Shown here piece after piece: positions 121-40,234 of a stretch of DNA of 64,000 nucleotides. The stretch lies in NCBI GenBank assembly GCA_029953675.1, contig JAMWBK010000002.1, positions 2,480,001 through 2,544,000 on the forward strand, given 5' to 3'. Numbering within the stretch: the stretch's first letter is position 1; the number at the start of each line of letters is the position of its first letter. The position numbers and the translations under genes are program-made. Source of the DNA: Rhodosorus marinus CCMP1338 (lineage: Eukaryota > Plantae > Rhodophyta). The notes beneath the pieces were generated by a model that ran no database searches, was not told the origin of the DNA, and was given only the letters and a program-made list of their open reading frames with translations.

Positions 121-2604
121 TCAATTTGTGTCCTGCTCGCCCACGCCGACACCCGCAGGCTCAGGCTTAACGCAGTCCCATAGTTTCTGATATGCTTCGC
201 TTTTATCTGAGTCCAGTCCAAGCTCGTTGATGTCCGAACCAAACTTTCGTACGTCCAAGTAAAGCTGCATGCTGATTTTGTCCATCTCTGCATTGTTGCC
301 TGCTGCACCTATGTTCAGTCTTCGCAGTGTATCTGCAGTCTGTCTCACGTTGAGAAGCAAATCTTTCGCCAGTTCGTAGTATCCAGTTACAGTTAATTCG
401 ACAACCTCCTTCAGAATTTTGTTCTTCTCACTTTCGGTTAATGTAACTTCGGGATCCGTCAAGAACTGTCTCAGCGGCTTCAAAACATTGGGGACAAAGC
501 GACTATACTGTGTTGGCGCTGGTCTGTTGGTCATTCTGTACGTTGCAAGAATTCCTCGCATTGTCTGCAAAGTCTCTATGCAACCCTTTGATATGACGGA
601 CGAAATTCTCTCTCCCAGGTCTGGCTTAAGCGAAGCCAGGTTTTCTATCGCGTCGGAGAACGCGTTGTCGATGGCAGTTGTAGCTTCGCTCGGGAGCTTT
701 CCGTTAGACCCCATCCGCACGACTGATGCCAACTCAGCCTGCAATCTCTCGGTTAATGTCTCCACATCAGAAAATACGACAGAAACATCCTTCGCGAGCA
801 TGTCGGTCCCCCAAGATTCTTCTAAACCCTTTTTGGTCCATGTCGTGTACCTGAACCGTACCGAGTCGCTACAATGAGAAAAACAACAGACTCCCCTTCT
901 TTCCCCTTCTTCACTCAAGCGCATCGACTTCACTTACCTCGCTAGGAGCTGAAGCGACAGTTTCAAAAATTTGTGAGTTAGCGGCCGCAAAAAGACGTCA
1001 TCATCCCAGCACTTTCGAAGCGCGGACACCAGCGCCTTCGTCGCTTGAAGACGGTAGAGATCAGGAGAGAGAATTCGAACGGCTGTTGTTTCCAGTGTGT
1101 CAGCTCCTTTTACGCCAGTAGAAGAGGTCGAGAGTGAGGGAGTGCTTTTTAGAGCATCCTCAAAAGTATTTGTGACCTGAGCGAAAAAAAACATTGCGTG
1201 AGACGCGAGAAGCGATAGCAAAAAATGCATGTCCGCAGTTTTTGTAACTCACCTCCTGAAAACGAAGCTGAAAATACACAGGCAGGCTCCATCTTCGCCA
1301 AAATTTAACGGTCTGCTTATGCCTCTGGAGGGTTTCAAGCTTCTCCGCAGTAGAACAAAGTTTTTCCAGGAGGGAGAATATCCTGGTTGCTCCCATGAAA
1401 GACTTGTGAAAGACGTCGGCTATCCCAGGAGAGAACACATTAAGATTGGATTCGATCCCGCTCTCGACTATAAGCACATAGAAGACGGCACGCCTTCTGT
1501 TTAGCCACTGCGTCATCGTCTCCTGTTAGGTAGCATGTTTGTTAGAAGAGCCACTTACTCTCTGGCCAAATGGCGTTGTTCACAAAGTCGAAAGATCGAA
1601 GTCGTTCCTCTGAGTCGCAAAGGGACGTCACGGGATTGCACTTCTCCCTTACAAAGTCACCGATTAGTATCTCAGCGGACTCTAGAATGTCTGCCGTGGT
1701 CACGCTTTCAGCGTTGTTTCCCATCCTTTCTTCTGCCAAAGTTGAGCAAACTGACATCTTGAGCTTTGTGCTGACGAAGGGTTTCACAACTTCGGATTGA
1801 AAGAGATCCTCCGCTGCGCTGATTATTCCAGCAATGGCTATTGCTGAAAGTGCTCGCAAGAGCAAGTCCTGTCCAGTGCCGGGAAGTGAATAGTTAAAAG
1901 CGCTTAGGCTTTCTTCTAGTACCAGCTGAGGGGCTAAAGTTTCAGACTGGTGGATAAGAGTTTACCTTGTCAGCTGTGAGGGCTTCCTTTAACCATTGTT
2001 CCAGCTGCTCCCGCACATGCGTCTTCAACTTTCCCAAGCGGGGTGTCAAGGCGACAACGTACTTCGAGTTTTTGTCCACCTTGGCCAAGCAAAAGTCCAG
2101 CTGAGAGCTCACCGCGGCAGTACGTTCCAAAATTCGATAACGTTCATCGGATTGGCCATCGCAAGCTTCTACTTCTTTCAACAGTCGCTCACATTTGTAG
2201 ACGAGTTCGGAAATTCGGAGACATAACTCAAGTAGGTTCCTTTTGCTCGCATGCTGACTCCGCTTATCCAAGATTTTCAGGAGCTGTTCGATGTCCGATT
2301 CGAAAGAAGCTAAGATCACTTCGACTTCCTCGCGAAGCTTTTCGAGAGGCTCCAGCACCTCGTCGGTGAGTTGGTCAACATCGGAGACCGCCTCCCCTAG
2401 CGACATGAACGAGGAAAAATTTCCTTGGATCTGGCCAACGATCTCATCTGAGATCTCATCTAAGTGTACCTGTAGATCGTCGCGCAAAGTAGACAGCGGA
2501 GCCTTCACCCGAACAACCGAAACGAACTCCGACATCGACTGCTCCCTGTTTTGCAACGCCTCCCGTTCGAAGCACAGCTTTCGAGGGCCTTTGGCTTCCA
2601 TCAT
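121..2604 (-). CDS. COG2: Conserved oligomeric Golgi complex subunit 2 (about 5 exons)
   Basis: ORFs 1942-2604, 1542-1865, 1160-1516, 934-1230 and 121-933 join through GT-AG introns (e.g. 1869-1965, 1468-1558, 851-938). N-terminal 'LCFERE..L..LRDDL..L....NFSSFMSLG' coiled coil, internal 'NVFSPGIADVFH' and C-terminal 'YRMTNRPAPTQYSRFVPNVLKPL' match the COG2 family as I recall it. Confidence 0.78.
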
Positions 2605-16378: not shown

Positions 16379-18343
16379 CGTCTGCTACGATCCGAAAGAC
16401 ACCACCAATCCAACCACACGTGATACCCGATCAAAGGATCTGCACTCCCTCGTGTTTAAAAAGAAAAACCCTGGAAACCCAGAAGAAAACCGGATTCCAA
16501 CCAACAAATACGGGCTACAGTTTTTGCAATACAAACATATCCAAAACTTTTCATCAGGCTGACCACCCCCTTCCCCATCCCAATAGCCGGCGCCCAGCAC
16601 TCTATCTAACGATGAACATCCCCCTCACCATCCGCGTGACCCGAAACCCTCCCAAAAGGAGCAACCGGTAAAAGCAATGACTTCCAATATTTTTAGAGGC
16701 CTCTCCTTCCAAAGTCCAACTTCCATTGCCAATGAAACAAATGAAACCAAAATCCACCACCCCTCAATACTATTTACAATCTGCTTGGTCAGGTCGGTTT
16801 ACAAAACAAAAACCCTTTAATTATTTCTTCAATATCCTTATTCTTATTTTCAGCATATTTTCTGGGAGGGTTACTCGTTTGGAATGGAACCCCCCAGGGT
16901 AGAACGACCAAGCTTGCCATTTCGATTTTATTTTTTTTGCTCTCGATTCCGGCGGTGACGGATATTTTTCTTGTCCGTGAATCTGTGTAATTTCTTCTAA
17001 GCAACGTAAAGTTGCTTTTTAAAATATGTTTTGTGACTCAAGTCTTCTTTTAGAATGTGTTTGGAACAAAAACTTCACATTCACGCGAAATTGTCATGAA
17101 TAAGGGTAAGTGAGGTCCTGAAATAGATCTTAAAACGTTTTATGAAATGTGTAGTTTTTGTATTTATATACCGAGTGTTATAAAACTAATTTGCTATTTT
17201 AATCATTTTATTGATAGTTGCGATTATGTTGTGATAATATTGTAAAACTCTGTGAGTTTTACCCTCACCAAATATTTCGAGATGACGAGGCTGTCGCTCT
17301 TACGAGTGGCGAGGCAACTCACGGTTTGAAACAGGTCGACTTAAAGTTTCCTTGGTGCGCAATCCTGACGCATATAACATGACGTGCTTCCTGTTGGACT
17401 GCCCCAGCAAACCCGGACGTGGACTTGTCAATGAGACATGAGAACAGGCTTCCTAGTGTTTCCGGCTGAATACGATCACCCTTCAATGAGTTGGCTTCTT
17501 CAGTTCGACTTGTGCTAACAAATCATCGGCTCGAGAGACTGAGCGTCACTGAGAGTGGAGCAACTCTTGAGACCTATGAAACCCAAAGTTGTTCAGTCAA
17601 CTGAGGAGATGATCGATAATGGACTATGGGTGAATGTTCTCATCGCTCTCCAACCCATCACTGGTCGAGATTGAATCCTGCTGGTTCACCTCAACTTGGG
17701 AAGGTTTCAGTCATGTGGATTGACATTGTCCTACACTGGCGTACATGTGAAGGGAGTCTTCTGGCGAAGCCAAGCAGTAGTTAAAAGCAATTTTCCAGGC
17801 CTTGGTGCCCACCTTTACCGGGAGCGATCCTTCTCAAAGGACGAGCCAACTTTAAAGTCGCAAATCAGGGTATTTCAAAAACTGCTTTTCGAGTTTTATA
17901 GTAAGTATTTCTAGCATTTAAATTCAAACTAGATTTATTGGTGGAAAAATTATCGCCCATAATTTCAATATATTATGACAGTATTCATTTCTTCCTTCCG
18001 TTCTATAACGGCGAGGAAGGATGCATTTAGTAAGAATCTCGCTCGGCGCTCTAGGGTTTGGCTCCGAGACTGGGACGACATAGCAATTGCTCTGGGCTTT
18101 TGGGCGAGATTTTCTCATCATTAATTTAGCTCGGCGCTGTAATACCATATATGGTCTGCATCGAGAGGCTTTTTGGGGATCAACGACTGAAGCGACTGGT
18201 GTTAGAGTCCTGTGGGGTTCGGGTCTGGTTCGTAGGGTTTCATGAGGATCGTATTGGAGAGCCGTTTTCTGGATGGAGTGAAAATCTGCAGCTAACGGAA
18301 AATCAGAGGGATCTGGCAGATTGAGTTTCAGCACTTGCCGAGG

Positions 18344-19636
18344 ATGGCGGACTTTGAGAGCTTCTTTGGCACTGCTGGCCCCTTGGAGGTGACTGTTCAT
18401 GGATCGAACACAAGTCTGGACTGGAAGAGCATTGCTAGGGCGAAGCAGTTTAAGACTGGGAGCTTTGGATGGTATGGGAGCGGCAGGACAAGTTGCAGTT
18501 GGGATGGGGTTGAATCGGATGTGGTTCTGAGTCTAAGCGTGACCGTCCTCGGAAGCAAGAAGAACACCGACGAGCTTGAGAGCAAAGAAGCCTCGTCTAA
18601 GGCTAGGACTCAAACGCTAGACCTTGAGCTCTTTCAGGGACTTTCGAGCGCTGATAGCACAGACTTCGATTTGTCGACAAAGACACCGGCTTACAGGGAA
18701 CAAAATTGTGGGCCAGACCATACTCAAGCGCAGAGCCAGGAGCTGAAAGTACGACCGCACGCAGAAAATCCTCAGCCACAGGGTAACGATGGAAATTCAA
18801 GGCCTGCGCCGGGAGTACCTATCGGTCACGGGACTAAACCAGCTCCTGGTGCGAAGAAGAACCAGACACAGTCGGAACAAGTAAATCGCAACCCCCCCGA
18901 TGCGTGGGGTAATACTGGGTTCAGCACCAGCCATGCCCAAATTCAGAGCTTCCAAGCTGGTCGAACGATAAAGAAACAGGGACCCAGCCCGGGGAGCTCT
19001 GCCGAGAGTAAACCTGTCGGTCGAGGGATTGTGCCGAACGGAGTCTGGGACGATAGGGGGGTGAGCGACAATTTCGCACATGTGGATAGCTACTTTAAGA
19101 GCAAACTTGTCATCACCGAGCCCTATGTGAAGCAGCACTTCAACGAAGTTTTGTTCTTTCCGGACAAATCTGGTAACAACGTGAAGAAAGTTCTCTACTA
19201 CATAAGCTCCTCAAAGAACACTTTAGACGTGTGCGTCTACGCCTTCACAGACGACCGATTCAAAGACGCGCTGCTAGATCTTCACAAACGCGGAGTTCGA
19301 ATAAGAGTGCTATCCGATGAGACGATGTCCAAGGTTAAAGGCGCAGATGCACATGAACTCTTCGTCAACGGCATTCAGGTTCGCCTCGGCGGTGCGAGCT
19401 CGTACACAAGCATGCATCACAAGTTTGCGGTTGTGGATGACACGATCCTCTTGTCAGGCAGCTTCAATTGGACAGTGCAAGGAAGCAAGAAAAATTATGA
19501 GAACGTGATTATCACCTCAGATCCGAGGCTTATCAAAACCTTCTCCTGCGAATTTGGAAGACTCTGGGGTTCAATTGACAAGATTCCGTCCGCGACGGAT
19601 AAGCAACCACCGGAGAAACCAGACGGGAAACCGTGA
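18344..19636 (+). CDS. PLD6/Zucchini/Nuc-like single-HKD protein with extra N-terminal domain; intronless
   Basis: C-terminal 'VLFFPD...LDVCVYAFTD...RGVRIRVLSD...MHHKFAVVD...LSGSFNWT....NYENVII' is the MitoPLD/Nuc fold (HKD at 19415-19438). First in-frame ATG at 18344. Confidence 0.88.
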   Translation: MADFESFFGTAGPLEVTVHGSNTSLDWKSIARAKQFKTGSFGWYGSGRTSCSWDGVESDVVLSLSVTVLGSKKNTDELESKEASSKARTQTLDLELFQGLSSADSTDFDLSTKTPAYREQNCGPDHTQAQSQELKVRPHAENPQPQGNDGNSRPAPGVPIGHGTKPAPGAKKNQTQSEQVNRNPPDAWGNTGFSTSHAQIQSFQAGRTIKKQGPSPGSSAESKPVGRGIVPNGVWDDRGVSDNFAHVDSYFKSKLVITEPYVKQHFNEVLFFPDKSGNNVKKVLYYISSSKNTLDVCVYAFTDDRFKDALLDLHKRGVRIRVLSDETMSKVKGADAHELFVNGIQVRLGGASSYTSMHHKFAVVDDTILLSGSFNWTVQGSKKNYENVIITSDPRLIKTFSCEFGRLWGSIDKIPSATDKQPPEKPDGKP

Positions 19637-19950: not shown

Positions 19951-22812
19951 TCACTTTCCATAATCGAATCCTGGGTACCTGTCTACGCACTTGGGCAGCT
20001 CTAGTCCCATTGAGGATGCTCTTGCCAAGTACGCCTTCCAGCTCTTCTCGCAGTCAGCGAGGGAAATCTCCTTCAATCGTAGTTTGTGGGTTCCGGCATT
20101 TTCGTCGGAGCGAAGGCGGTGGTTCTCGTCTCGATATTTGTCACGAACTACGCCCAGAATCTCAAATGTTCGGTTGCTCGGCTTCAGCCCTAGCGTACGA
20201 ACGAGCTCCAAAGACGCAGACTTGGAGAAGACCTCCTCCGATCTAAGATTGAGGAACGTCACCGATTCCGCCTCGCGAAACTTTGAAATCTCCTGAGCAA
20301 CCGCTTCAGTGTTCAGGATATAAGAGTTTATTAGCTGCAGAGGAGTAAGCTCGTAATCCGGAGCGATAGCTGGTGTTTTCGAGTTCACCGAGTTCGCAGT
20401 CTCCATCCACTGATAGCCATCACGATCCGAGAAGAAGCCGGTTTCGTAAATCGATCTCAAAAGAGCCGGAGGCCACTTCCGCAGGTTGATTATCGTTAGC
20501 TGAAAATTTCTTCCAAATTCCCGCAGGACGATGTCATAGTACCACGACTTAAAGTTAGGATTAGTTTCAATATACACAATTGGTCCGCCAGTATTAACAA
20601 GTCGTACGTGTCCACGAAGCCAATGAACAACCTGCAGAGGTACCCCGTTTTGCTTTTCGATAGTTCCGCCCCAGCCTCGACTTGCGGAAACGGGCGTTCT
20701 CTGTGATCGCATCAATGTCTCCAGTTCCTTAAGAATCATCGTATACTTCACATCCTTCCTGTTTCTGTAGCTGTGCGGCAACGAAGTGTTTTGCATCCTC
20801 ATCGCACCACCTGAAGAGCACTTCTTCTCTGGGCAGGCAGGTTCGTGCAAGGATACTACGTTTCCCTCTACTGTTCCTAGCAGATCTGCGAGGTAACGAG
20901 ACCCGCTCCGGCCAGCGTTCACAGAAAATACCATATCTGCGAGCTTGGGAAGGTTGGACTCTGGGATCCATTTCGAATTCAGCAGCGATGCCCTGGTCCT
21001 CATTGCGGACTCTATGACTTCCGAAAGGACTACCAGCCTTCTCGTCTGCAATGCCTCCAGAGCTGCGGATGCGTAGGACAAGGATAACGTCGCAGTTGAG
21101 TCGATGCCAACGACCGAAAGGTGATGGAATACGTTAGCTTTCTCTACCAGTTCCTTCAAAAGTTGTCTTACGTGCGAAGTTGGACGAGATTCATCTTCTG
21201 GGCCGACAAGTAGGACAAACTCAACGTTCACATCCTGCAAAAGATTCACGCCGACCTCAAAACTTTGCCCCTGTCCTTCTTTCACACTTTGAGCGATGAC
21301 GAGCCGTTCTCGAGGATTGGATCCATGAAGCGAGGAAATCAACGTGTTCCGGATATGACGTTCTTCATCCAGCCGATCCGGAAACGTGTTCGTTTGAGCC
21401 AAGCGTGCTGAAGAATCAAGAAAGTCCTGATCAACGGGGCCAAGGAGGACCAAGATGTGCTCAAGCAGCTCCTTTGGCAAAGCATCGTGCAAAACGTACG
21501 TAACACGCCCATGCCGGGCTCGCGGCAACGCAGGTAGGGTTAGCGAGCTGCTATCTTCCTCATCAATAAGTTCCTCCAGAGCATCCCAATCAATGGAAGC
21601 GGATGCGGGTAGTCCCTCCAGAAGCGTCCTAAGGCCACCAGGTGTTTCTCGTCCCCATTTCAGCACCTCTCTTGCTCGCCACGACTCTACTAGAGAGAAC
21701 ATATCGTTTTTCCACATGGAATTAATAACAAGGTCTCTGGGGATTGGGAAGATGTGCTCTTTGGGGAGTAGATTTCCGCTAGGATGGAAGAGGGCGTCGA
21801 AGATCTTCCCTCGAACGGTCGCGTCTGGGACGTTCGCTCTCCTCCCTAGCGCTTCATACCATGCGCTTTTGAGAATGGCGTTTTCTATGCTTGCAAATTT
21901 CATCTCTATGATCTTGCACCTCTCAGTGCCTTGTTTTCCGCGCCCTTTGTTCTTGGGGGGAGTTCCGCACAAGTTTCGGGGGCATTTCAAAGTATGGATT
22001 GATGCATTCTGCTCACCGAGATCGCGAGAAAGCGAGGTTTCCGTGTTGTACATGACCTTCCCGTCGTCAGCGAAAATCACAGTCTGACGTCGCTCCAGGA
22101 AGTTCGTCGAGAAATCCTCCTCCAGAACTCTATGCCAAAAGGGTGACTTCCAAGCCTCCAGCCAGGGAAGGTTTAGGCTTTCACCTGGTTTGAGCTGCAA
22201 GATTCTTTCGCGAAGTGAGCCGTCCCGCACGCAGTTCGCGGAGAAGAACTCATCGTAGTCAAGTAGAACAAAATGGGTACCCCCTGCTTTCCGTCCATAC
22301 TCCAGAAGAATGTTCCGATCCCTCATCTCCTCTCGTCTCTTCCACGGCCCAGTTTTCTTGAGCAGAACCTCCACTTTGTGCTCATGATGGTCCTCAATTA
22401 ACCCAACAGTGTTGTCCTCGGAGTGGTCGTCAAGGACAACCACTGAGTCCACAACCCGACTTATCGCTGTCAGAAAGAACGGAACGGCATTTCTTACGTT
22501 CCGGACCTCGACAAGGGCGACGATCTTGCTTCTAGGAAGATTTCGATTTCCTTTGTACCCATCAGAATACCACGTCACGCTCAAATCAGCTTCGACGGCC
22601 GTCCTTGTGCCTTGAGATCGGAAACGAAACCCTACGGCAACCGCTGCCACGACCGCACCAACGATCGCCAAAAGCGCCAGGAGAGTCTTAGCATTCAAAA
22701 ATCTCTTCAGAGAGGACCGCCGCCTTTTGCTCTTCGAGTTTGGATCCTCAAATAAAGGAATTTCGGGGCGGTTCTCCTTCCGGTTCCCCTTCCTCTTCTG
22801 CATGCGGATCAT
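19951..22812 (-). CDS. Type II membrane protein: GT2-like glycosyltransferase fused to a PAPS-dependent sulfotransferase; intronless, 953 aa
   Basis: Basic cytosolic tail, then TM 'LLALLAIVGAVVAAVAVGF'. GT-A motifs 'VRN....FL......DSVVVLDDHSEDNT', 'RNILLE' and 'FVLLDYDE'. C-terminal P-loop-like 'FSVNAGRSGSRYLADLL', 'SLHEP', 'YIETN' and 'IINLRK' are typical of Sulfotransfer_3-like enzymes. Confidence 0.85.
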   Translation of the reverse strand: MIRMQKRKGNRKENRPEIPLFEDPNSKSKRRRSSLKRFLNAKTLLALLAIVGAVVAAVAVGFRFRSQGTRTAVEADLSVTWYSDGYKGNRNLPRSKIVALVEVRNVRNAVPFFLTAISRVVDSVVVLDDHSEDNTVGLIEDHHEHKVEVLLKKTGPWKRREEMRDRNILLEYGRKAGGTHFVLLDYDEFFSANCVRDGSLRERILQLKPGESLNLPWLEAWKSPFWHRVLEEDFSTNFLERRQTVIFADDGKVMYNTETSLSRDLGEQNASIHTLKCPRNLCGTPPKNKGRGKQGTERCKIIEMKFASIENAILKSAWYEALGRRANVPDATVRGKIFDALFHPSGNLLPKEHIFPIPRDLVINSMWKNDMFSLVESWRAREVLKWGRETPGGLRTLLEGLPASASIDWDALEELIDEEDSSSLTLPALPRARHGRVTYVLHDALPKELLEHILVLLGPVDQDFLDSSARLAQTNTFPDRLDEERHIRNTLISSLHGSNPRERLVIAQSVKEGQGQSFEVGVNLLQDVNVEFVLLVGPEDESRPTSHVRQLLKELVEKANVFHHLSVVGIDSTATLSLSYASAALEALQTRRLVVLSEVIESAMRTRASLLNSKWIPESNLPKLADMVFSVNAGRSGSRYLADLLGTVEGNVVSLHEPACPEKKCSSGGAMRMQNTSLPHSYRNRKDVKYTMILKELETLMRSQRTPVSASRGWGGTIEKQNGVPLQVVHWLRGHVRLVNTGGPIVYIETNPNFKSWYYDIVLREFGRNFQLTIINLRKWPPALLRSIYETGFFSDRDGYQWMETANSVNSKTPAIAPDYELTPLQLINSYILNTEAVAQEISKFREAESVTFLNLRSEEVFSKSASLELVRTLGLKPSNRTFEILGVVRDKYRDENHRLRSDENAGTHKLRLKEISLADCEKSWKAYLARASSMGLELPKCVDRYPGFDYGK

Positions 22813-28800: not shown

Positions 28801-32802
<4,002 letters not shown>

Positions 32803-39406: not shown

Positions 39407-40234
39407 ATGAACCAGAACGCATTCGGAGGTGGGTTTGGGGCCACCAATAACAACAATGGAAATGGAGGAGTTTTCTCGAGACTTGGAGACAACAACAACA
39501 ACCAGATGGAAGGCGGAAATAGATCTAGTGGTGGAGCAGGATTTCAAGGGGACAGGTCGGGCCCTAGAAACAGTCAAAACTCGAGGGTTTGCAAGTTTTG
39601 GCTTAAGGGTACTTGCAACTACGGGGCAAACTGCAAGTTTGAACATCCGACGGGTGCGAATCCTGGTGGTCAAAGCATGTCAAATCCTCAGAACAACACT
39701 ATGCGCGACGGAGGGCACAATGCGTTTGGGAACAATAATAATAACAACGCCTTCGGCGCCGGAAGAGGCAATAGCAATAATACGTTTGGTGCTGGTGGAG
39801 GAGCAGGGTTTGGAAACGACAATAATAGGAATGGTTTTGGATTCGGAAGTACTAGTGTAGGAAACAATAGCGGTGGCAAACAGAAGAGCGTATGCAGGCA
39901 TTGGTTGAAAGGACAGTGCAAGTTCGGACCAGAAAACTGCAAATATGAGCATCCCGCAGCACAGGAGGAATTGATCCTTGAGGACCTAATGAATGGAATA
40001 CCCCAGTGGCCATTATCTGGGTACGGAAGGAAGAACCAAGCATCTGTTGTTGTTGGGGACGTCTCCCCGGAGGAGTTACGTGTCTCCGGATACGCCGCCG
40101 CGTTCAGCGGAGCTACCAAGGATGCAATTGTTGAGTCAGAGGCTCAGGCCGTTCAAGCGCAAAAACAAAAATTCATTACCGTTGTAGATGAGAACAAAGC
40201 AAAGATTGAGAGCATCAAACGGAGCTATACCTGA
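39407..40234 (+). CDS. CCCH zinc-finger FG nucleoporin, NUP42/NUPL2/Amo1-like; intronless
   Basis: Two C-x7/8-C-x5/6-C-x3-H fingers ('CKFWLKGTCNYGANCKFEH', 'CRHWLKGQCKFGPENCKYEH'), about 9 FG motifs in a G/N-rich background, and 'QWPLSGYG...DVSPEELR' as in NUPL2. Confidence 0.75.
   Translation: MNQNAFGGGFGATNNNNGNGGVFSRLGDNNNNQMEGGNRSSGGAGFQGDRSGPRNSQNSRVCKFWLKGTCNYGANCKFEHPTGANPGGQSMSNPQNNTMRDGGHNAFGNNNNNNAFGAGRGNSNNTFGAGGGAGFGNDNNRNGFGFGSTSVGNNSGGKQKSVCRHWLKGQCKFGPENCKYEHPAAQEELILEDLMNGIPQWPLSGYGRKNQASVVVGDVSPEELRVSGYAAAFSGATKDAIVESEAQAVQAQKQKFITVVDENKAKIESIKRSYT

Follow-up and report, generated by a model that had tools for sequence, protein, structure and literature searches.

A predicted glycosyltransferase-sulfotransferase fusion protein of the red alga Rhodosorus marinus, its red-algal family and its bacterial relatives

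Introduction

The glycans of red algae include agars, carrageenans, porphyrans, and sulfated exopolysaccharides. Enzymes that carry two catalytic domains on one polypeptide and perform consecutive steps on a glycan are known from other systems: NDST is a type II Golgi protein in which an N-terminal deacetylase precedes a C-terminal sulfotransferase (ST) of the Sulfotransfer_1 type, with a PKxGTT loop and 3′-phosphoadenosine 5′-phosphosulfate (PAPS) as the sulfate donor, and EXT1/EXT2, K4CP, and PmHS2 are polymerases that join two glycosyltransferase (GT) modules. Here, we analyzed a 64,000-nucleotide stretch of the genome of the red alga Rhodosorus marinus CCMP1338 (contig JAMWBK010000002.1, positions 2,480,001 to 2,544,000; hereafter, the window) and describe a gene in it whose 953-residue product is predicted to join a GT2-like glycosyltransferase of GT-A fold to a divergent sulfotransferase domain.

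Sulfation in red algae takes place in the Golgi with PAPS as the donor, and the glycosyltransferases and carbohydrate sulfotransferases that act on red-algal sulfated glycans are still hypothetical, recombinant work on them being hard as well (PMC10311240). The fusion protein would share with NDST the type II Golgi plan, the two catalytic domains with the sulfotransferase at the C-terminus, the succession of two steps on one glycan, and the use of PAPS, but its N-terminal domain is a GT-A domain where that of NDST is a deacetylase. The parallel with EXT and NDST drawn in the preliminary description of this locus stands for the logic of two consecutive glycan steps and not for ancestry: no deacetylase or Sulfotransfer_1 match was found in the protein by Pfam and PDB searches, which detected no sequence kinship to NDST. 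Unlike EXT1/EXT2, K4CP, and PmHS2, it would have sulfation as its second activity and shows no sign of polymerization. The fusion is a new domain architecture of known enzyme kinds, including a sulfotransferase branch missed by standard annotation.

One intronless gene encodes both domains

We consider it probable, with real room for the alternatives discussed below, that the product is a type II membrane protein of the secretory pathway with two active enzymes on one chain, a GT2-like GT-A glycosyltransferase and a PAPS-dependent sulfotransferase. The gene lies on the reverse strand (Table 1), and its open reading frame (ORF) is the longest of all ORFs in the window by a wide margin. Translation and inspection of the start and stop codons bore out the single 953-aa ORF described previously, direct translation placed an in-frame stop three codons upstream of the ATG, and the motifs that had been pointed out (DDHSED, DYDE, NAGRSGS, and HEP) all lay at the reported sites, to within a few bases. 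The nearest database protein, a 952-aa R. marinus protein from the MMETSP transcriptome collection (P0002; UniRef A0A7S2Z8L6), is colinear with the window protein at 92% identity and 100% query coverage. Separate transcripts from two genes had been named as an outcome that would overturn the fusion; the full-length single transcript in a close relative, together with the intronless coding sequence (CDS), speaks against two genes.

Word-indexed and exhaustive searches recovered about 40 proteins of 880-1340 aa that match the architecture from end to end and are 32-38% identical, among them proteins of Agarophyton chilense, Gracilaria domingensis, and Porphyridium purpureum (FVE85_3619/KAA8492181.1). 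Their annotations read "hypothetical," "unnamed," or "uncharacterized," and none carries a precomputed Pfam domain. Two blocks, aa ~96-390 and aa ~623-900, hold most of the conservation, which is weak over aa ~400-620. Since 32 relatives of about 900-1100 aa have the whole layout in common and the motif residues vary little or not at all, the fusion architecture is not a product of chance.

Table 1. Features of the fusion gene, in window coordinates. Residue counts are over 33 red-algal sequences; pLDDT, predicted local distance difference test; AF2, AlphaFold2.
Feature	Residues (aa)	Position	Strand	Basis
GT-sulfotransferase fusion CDS, complete, intronless	953 aa	19951..22812	(-)	ORF list; ATG start and TGA stop verified
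Basic N-terminal tail, presumably cytosolic	1-40	22693..22812	(-)	K/R excess; pLDDT <50, predicted disordered
Single transmembrane signal-anchor helix	41-65	22618..22692	(-)	Hydropathy and AF2 helix
Stem region	66-95	22528..22617	(-)	Weak conservation, low to moderate pLDDT
GT-A fold glycosyltransferase domain, GT2-like	96-345	21778..22527	(-)	Pfam, PDB profile match, AF2, Foldseek
DDHSED, "DDxSxD" nucleotide-binding motif of GT2 enzymes	128-133	22414..22431	(-)	D129 33/33; D128, S131, and D133 each 32/33
DYDE, DXD metal/diphosphate-binding motif	185-188	22249..22260	(-)	All four residues 33/33
H273-x3-C277-P-R-x2-C282 (with C194, C299)	273-282	21967..21996	(-)	Invariant columns
Helical linker, partly conserved	346-432	21517..21777	(-)	E376, W378, R379, and W386 invariant; AF2 helices 370-422
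Middle α/β module, poorly conserved	433-615	20968..21516	(-)	Alternating β/α elements 436-613, pLDDT 60-86
Predicted divergent sulfotransferase domain	623-940	19993..20946	(-)	AF2, Foldseek, two-step profile link
N-A-G-R-S-G-S-R-Y, 5′-phosphosulfate-binding (PSB) loop	632-640	20893..20919	(-)	Conservation and alignment
H656-E657-P658 after strand β2, candidate catalytic base region	656-658	20839..20847	(-)	H and E 33/33
ETNPNFK, "NPNFK" subclade signature	749-755	20548..20568	(-)	Invariant or nearly so; ETNHMFI in bacterial relatives
R778-K779...S787, 3′-phosphate-binding strand-helix motif	778-787	20452..20481	(-)	K779 31 K and 2 R; S787 33/33; spacing 8

The type II topology proposed earlier, a basic tail followed by one membrane span, was borne out by a charge count over aa 1-41 (14 K/R against 4 D/E), by hydropathy, and by the helix that AlphaFold2 models at aa 41-65. 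Strong hydrophobicity is confined to aa 42-64 (Kyte-Doolittle mean 2.8; maximum at aa 44-62), and in homologues a corresponding hydrophobic segment likewise follows basic residues. Six cysteines are invariant in the two catalytic domains (C194, C277, C282, C299, C660, and C665), a pattern that fits a luminal setting, and the protein most likely resides in the Golgi.

A GT2-like domain predicted to transfer single sugars

The region aa 96-345 is predicted, from sequence profiles and structural models, to be an active GT2-like GT-A domain, in agreement with the preliminary description. Pfam family PF13704 (Glyco_tranf_2_4) matched the window protein at aa 104-202 with 27.1 bits (E 6e-6), covering profile positions 1-96 of 98; 21 of 24 relatives matched the same family (best E 4.3e-7) and nine matched PF00535 (Glycos_transf_2). 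Searched against the PDB, the family profile matched the N-terminus of the GT2 enzyme GmaR, placing "DDHStD" on "DTGSTD." A full-length AlphaFold2 model built from the 33-sequence alignment had a mean pLDDT of 76.3, with aa 97-345 as its most confident part (85-94). Foldseek matched this domain to the S-glycosyltransferases SunS/ThuS (E 1.5e-6), followed by TarS, COLGALT1, K4CP, SpsA, and WrtF; the top 12 matches were all GT-A enzymes, each with probability 1.0 except K4CP (0.93), and the heparosan synthase PmHS2 was also among the fold matches.

In its fold, N-terminal DDxSxD motif, and DXD motif, the domain is like the non-processive GT2 enzymes (SunS/ThuS, TarS, SpsA, GmaR; PF13704), but identity is only 11-19%, and the red-algal H-x3-CPR-x2-C element and helical extension matched no known family. 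The features specific to this GT region are H273-x3-CPR-x2-C282, C194, C299, and the helical extension (KSAWYEALGR; E376-x-W-R); the H-x3-CPR-x2-C element with C194 and C299 is a candidate for luminal disulfides or for a part of the acceptor site. A polymerizing role, to which the preliminary description alluded, is not supported, because the protein lacks the multi-transmembrane channel architecture of processive GT2 enzymes and its nearest structural matches add single sugars.

A predicted, divergent sulfotransferase domain linked through bacterial proteins

Judged by its sequence profile, the C-terminal domain belongs to the PAPS-sulfotransferase superfamily, as a divergent and uncharacterized branch. 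The evidence is a two-step link. An exhaustive profile search returned 312 relatives, including a large family of standalone proteins of ~270 aa, and an alignment of 50 bacterial members of that family (A3) matched the alignment of the red-algal C-terminal domain (A2) with an hhalign probability of 100% (E 7e-51). Among the 50 A3 members, 23 matched Pfam Sulfotransfer_3, 4 matched Sulfotransfer_4, and 3 matched Sulfotransfer_1 (P0087 and P0063 exceeding the PF00685 cutoff), and the A3 consensus reached 27.6 bits against PF13469 (Sulfotransfer_3; cutoff 27), with profile positions 2-213 of 216 covered. A3 also matched a profile built from nine canonical sulfotransferases encoded in the same loci at 97.8% (E 1e-12, 187 columns), against which the GT and middle segments of the fusion protein, used as negative controls, scored nothing.

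The functional motifs pair in register along this path: GRSGS with PRSGST at the 5′-phosphosulfate loop, HEP with the "AEP" of a canonical Sulfotransfer_3 protein, and LR[RK]...S with R...S at the 3′-phosphate site, where K779...S787 of the red-algal domain aligned with the invariant R113...S121 of A3 and with the "R....v.S" of canonical sulfotransferases. Loop residues N632, G634, R635, G637, S638, and Y640 are present in 33/33 sequences and S636 in 30/33. Glutamate-base sulfotransferases are established in TPST and the heparan sulfate sulfotransferases, and by analogy E657 may serve as the catalytic base and PAPS as the donor.

The AlphaFold2 model of aa 612-953 (pLDDT 78; predicted template modeling score 0.78) was matched by Foldseek first to the CurM sulfotransferase (E 1e-4, TMt 0.48) and then to TPST2, the OLS sulfotransferase, and cytosolic SULTs, with TPST1 also among the best. 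With CurM, OLS, and TPST1/2 (Sulfotransfer_3, PF13469), the domain has in common a G/P-R-S-G-[ST] loop, a Glu after β2, and R...S, in the same order, but it differs from them in failing Pfam, in a 40-residue low-confidence insert (aa ~704-745), in a Cys loop after HEP, in its ETNPNFK and WMET signatures, and in having K for R at the 3′-phosphate position. The acceptors of these enzymes, a polyketide β-hydroxyl or tyrosine, are unlikely to apply to the window domain. The inserts at aa 704-745 (nt ~20578-20703) and aa 895-909 are family specific, variable, and of low pLDDT, and bacterial relatives do without them; those of many Florideophyceae-type members contain conserved cysteines.

Several results weigh against a protein that unites two active enzymes of these kinds. 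On the GT side, the PF13704 score lies 0.4 bits under the Pfam gathering cutoff of 27.5, and the best structural matches are glycosyltransferases that act on peptides, proteins, or teichoic acid and do not imply a polysaccharide acceptor. On the sulfotransferase side, neither the C-terminal domain (aa 600-953) nor the A2 consensus gave a Pfam, NCBIfam, or PDB sequence match; direct hhalign comparison of the red-algal domain with canonical sulfotransferases aligned the P-loop only (E 0.0018-0.013); most red-algal members carry Lys in place of the usual Arg at the 3′-phosphate position; and the Foldseek matches were weak (TM 0.3-0.48), with chains of human deoxycytidine kinase (dCK), and dCK and deoxyguanosine kinase (dGK) chains in general, scoring about as well. 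The neighboring eukaryotic genes (PLD-like, SMC, COG2, and CCCH zinc finger) are uninformative on function. Direct Pfam, NCBIfam, and PDB sequence searches with the whole protein, its C-terminal and middle pieces, and profiles A1-A3 returned no sulfotransferase, and the weak matches to BrxL, GFP, and Cfr among their results were judged to be due to chance.

The missing Pfam sulfotransferase match and the many deoxycytidine and deoxyguanosine kinase chains whose matches to the model (E 2.6e-4 to 7e-3) are similar to those of sulfotransferases would also suit a P-loop kinase or NTPase, such as an enzyme phosphorylating sugars or glycans, and at these near-equal scores and TM values the fold cannot by itself separate a sulfotransferase from dCK. 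Sequence comparison points the other way. No Walker A motif, GxxxxGK[ST], was found at the loop in the 33 red-algal and 50 bacterial sequences (three incidental pattern matches all lie >250 residues away), and the loop reads G-R-S-G-S as in Sulfotransfer_3; kinase families in Pfam matched 0/50 A3 members, against 23/50 for Sulfotransfer_3; and the profile link to canonical sulfotransferases comes with a conserved R/K...S spacing of 8. On the strength of this link, the Pfam matches within A3, the aligned motifs, and the absence of Walker A at the loop, we favor a sulfotransferase over an NTPase and consider a kinase very unlikely. The preliminary description of a C-terminal sulfotransferase with a PAPS loop and "LHEP" therefore holds for the motifs, which are intact, and for the family assignment; structure prediction, proposed at the time as a check on both folds, was clear for GT-A and ambiguous for the sulfotransferase against dCK/dGK.

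Bacterial relatives, gene neighborhoods, and the probable acceptor

The standalone sulfotransferase-like family occurs in cyanobacteria (Okeania, Trichodesmium, Crocosphaera, and Chroococcus), Nitrospira, Brocadia, Bacteroidota, Deltaproteobacteria, and others; those A3 members that bear names are all called "hypothetical protein," and none is characterized. These bacterial proteins resemble the red-algal C-terminal domain in their motif set and in their association or fusion with GT2 proteins, but they are standalone and cytoplasmic in type, read ETNHMFI, are devoid of the insert, the cysteines, and a membrane anchor, and are found in glycan clusters of the ABC-transporter-dependent kind. In a survey of 33 bacterial loci, many of them on short contigs, the sulfotransferase-like genes had Wzm/Wzt nearby in 9, GT2 genes within the flank in about 14, a GT2 gene immediately upstream in at least 8, and canonical sulfotransferases nearby in about 10. 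The Nitrospira japonica locus runs Wzm-Wzt(Wzt_C)-ST-like-orf-ST-ST-GT2-ST-GT2, where Wzt_C is a domain that binds the glycan end. The Chroococcus locus (L007), with PTS genes, an O-methyltransferase, and a CHAT protein, was uninformative.

Fusions of sulfotransferase-like and GT2 domains were also found in unrelated architectures (P0058 and P0089, both of ~600 aa, P0091, and P0128). Their GT2 domains are not specifically kin to the red-algal GT, which indicates that the pairing has arisen repeatedly, and such repetition is good evidence that both activities act on the same glycan. The GT2 domain of P0058 was not recovered by the A4 profile. The GT2 genes directly upstream of bacterial sulfotransferase-like genes were considered as orthologues of the red-algal GT and rejected, since only a 24-column DDxSxD motif aligned; that motif is all that the adjacent GT2 genes have in common with it.

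These neighborhoods bear on a different use of the same chemistry, in which the GT would act on a protein or peptide that is secreted or part of the wall, and the sulfotransferase would then place sulfate on the attached glycan or on a residue close by, such as tyrosine, as TPST does in the Golgi. The best GT matches include enzymes that modify peptides and proteins (SunS/ThuS in glycocin S-glycosylation, COLGALT1 on collagen hydroxylysine, and GmaR on flagellin), and TPST2/TPST1, which have the RSG[ST] loop in common with the C-terminal domain, are among its best structural matches. However, structural matches at TM 0.3-0.5 do not fix acceptors, the glycan-acting TarS, K4CP, SpsA, and heparosan synthase were matched too, and the genes of the bacterial relatives are surrounded by the Wzm/Wzt, GT2, and sulfotransferase genes of polysaccharide clusters and do not adjoin peptide substrates. 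We regard protein modification as unlikely, although not negligible.

Three giant multi-domain proteins carry the sulfotransferase-like domain at their end: P0128 (1597 aa) with GT2 and an FkbM methyltransferase, P0105 (1298 aa) with MptE-like and coiled-coil-type matches, and P0091 (921 aa) with GT2 and a methyltransferase. Their layout is reminiscent of the terminal-modifying enzymes of ABC-transporter-dependent glycan pathways.

Because relatives adjoin Wzm/Wzt with Wzt_C, because giant fusions such as P0128, P0105, and P0091 exist, and because the middle module of the red-algal protein is collinear with the family yet devoid of its motifs, the fusion protein might be a "cap-and-sulfate" enzyme of the chain end and not one that builds the backbone. 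It would add and sulfate one terminal sugar, marking or terminating the chain, as a eukaryotic counterpart of bacterial multi-domain terminal modifiers, with the middle module as a dead sulfotransferase duplicate reused as a spacer or acceptor site. We consider this specific role quite unlikely.

A 278-aa partner ORF without a Pfam match (in locus L012, 8850-9686 (+)) stands beside the sulfotransferase-like gene in about 9 of the 33 loci, its homologues adjoining that gene in L004, L010, L014, L024, L026, L030, and L031; in P0071, a homologue (38% identity, E 2e-34) is fused N-terminally to the sulfotransferase-like domain. The partner ORF contains the GT-A-like strings TNVD and GYDCFVF. It was rejected as an ancestor of the red-algal GT domain and as a sulfotransferase-like paralogue, at an hhalign probability of 0.2% both ways.

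For two active enzymes on one chain, we propose the following mechanism. The anchor would be oriented N-in with the catalytic part luminal, most likely in the Golgi. The GT-A domain, inverting and metal dependent, would bind the nucleotide sugar through DDHSED and DYDE and transfer one sugar to a luminal glycan acceptor. In the sulfotransferase domain, the GRSGS loop (R635, S636, and S638) would hold the 5′-phosphosulfate and K779/S787 the 3′-phosphate, and E657, with H656, is probably the base that activates the acceptor hydroxyl. The helical linker and a non-catalytic α/β module would tether the two domains, and the added or a neighboring sugar would be sulfated without release. We infer the donor sugars, the use of PAPS, the order of the reactions, and a sulfated cell-wall or mucilage glycan as the acceptor; a tie to sulfated galactan or exopolysaccharide may likewise exist. 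To our knowledge, the unicellular lineages that carry the fusion family make no agar or carrageenan, and for this reason a pan-red-algal glycan (mucilage or exopolysaccharide, a side branch, or a glycoprotein glycan) is a more likely target than an agar or carrageenan backbone.

A third module between the catalytic domains

The region between the two conserved blocks, suggested earlier to be a third domain, is predicted to fold; its identity is unproven and its conservation poor (mean column identity 0.3-0.5; no Pfam match). On the AlphaFold2 model, it is more probable than not that this region is a folded third module. In hhalign, it matched A3 with a score of 39.2 (E 4.8e-5, probability 68%), collinearly and with both halves in order, whereas none of 31 shuffled or reversed controls exceeded 20.6 and no other segment of the protein exceeded 20.8. 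Identity over the aligned columns is 7%, no catalytic motif is retained, the match to the red-algal sulfotransferase domain itself or to canonical sulfotransferases was not significant, and the order of secondary-structure elements is compatible with a sulfotransferase-like fold. That the module is a degenerate sulfotransferase-like duplicate without catalytic motifs is a tentative suggestion, which we hold to be somewhat doubtful. A duplicate of the GT domain was rejected (probability 2%).

If the middle region is already one degenerate sulfotransferase-like module, domain decay does occur in this lineage, which would suit a reading in which only one of the two main domains is catalytic, with the other serving as a pseudoenzyme for binding or scaffolding, for example a sulfotransferase fold that holds a sulfated glycan or 3′-phosphoadenosine 5′-phosphate (PAP). 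We judge this highly improbable, given that neither domain shows any change in the residues expected for catalysis and cofactor binding over ~33 sequences that are only 32-38% identical, whereas the middle module has lost those residues.

Red-algal distribution and descent

In a maximum-likelihood tree of 136 sulfotransferase-like domains, the ~1000-aa proteins formed one clade (support 0.997) that spans at least three red-algal classes, with Rhodosorus and P0003 as one basal branch and Porphyridium P0041 at the base of the sister branch. Their sister group (clade 0.966; sister relationship 0.81) consists of short ST-only proteins of 320-470 aa (P0044, P0045, P0046, P0049, and P0050), which carry N-terminal signal peptides or anchors and, in 4/5, ETNPNFK. 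The ~600-aa GT2-ST fusions come next, ETNPNFK being common to nearly all these groups, and the ETNHMFI proteins of bacteria form a radiation of their own. Such a topology is consistent with vertical descent from an early mesophilic red alga, as far as the domain sequences suggest. One Gracilaria domingensis protein (P0023, FGB62_48g122) has a Gly/Ala/Arg-rich stretch as its last ~130 aa after "KLIS" of the sulfotransferase domain, and it was excluded from later alignments because this tail resembles a frameshift or gene-model error.

Literature searches on the accessions, or on any algal GT-sulfotransferase fusion, found no description. The family is conserved from unicellular Rhodosorus and Porphyridium to the Gracilariales and, with a sulfotransferase domain that has no Pfam match and with "hypothetical" annotations, would be invisible to Pfam-based surveys of algal sulfotransferases. 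The gene is thus a testable candidate for a long-open pathway, one among many glycosyltransferases and sulfotransferases in these genomes, and since its domains are covalently linked, the acceptor of one activity constrains that of the other. The transformable model Porphyridium has an orthologue, which offers a practical entry point to the synthesis of red-algal sulfated glycans. The analysis also defines a broad bacterial sulfotransferase-like family whose genes lie in polysaccharide clusters, a result that bears on the sulfated exopolymers of bacteria and cyanobacteria.

Surroundings of the gene

The ORF at 18335-19636 (+), whose product ends in a PLD-like HKD domain (Pfam PLDc_2, E 5.5e-30), is convergent with the fusion gene, tail to tail, with ~315 bp between the stop codons. 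An SMC protein (28843-32167 (+)) is split over several ORFs, with SMC_N at 28843-29493 and the hinge at 30422-32167, as is the Golgi-complex subunit COG2 (121-2604 (-)), with COG2_N at 1942-2604 and COG2_C at 121-933. These splits indicate that neighboring genes contain introns, against the uninterrupted 2.86-kb CDS of the fusion gene. Tandem CCCH zinc fingers are encoded in the ORF at 39407-40234 (+) (zf-CCCH_4, E 1.3e-16).

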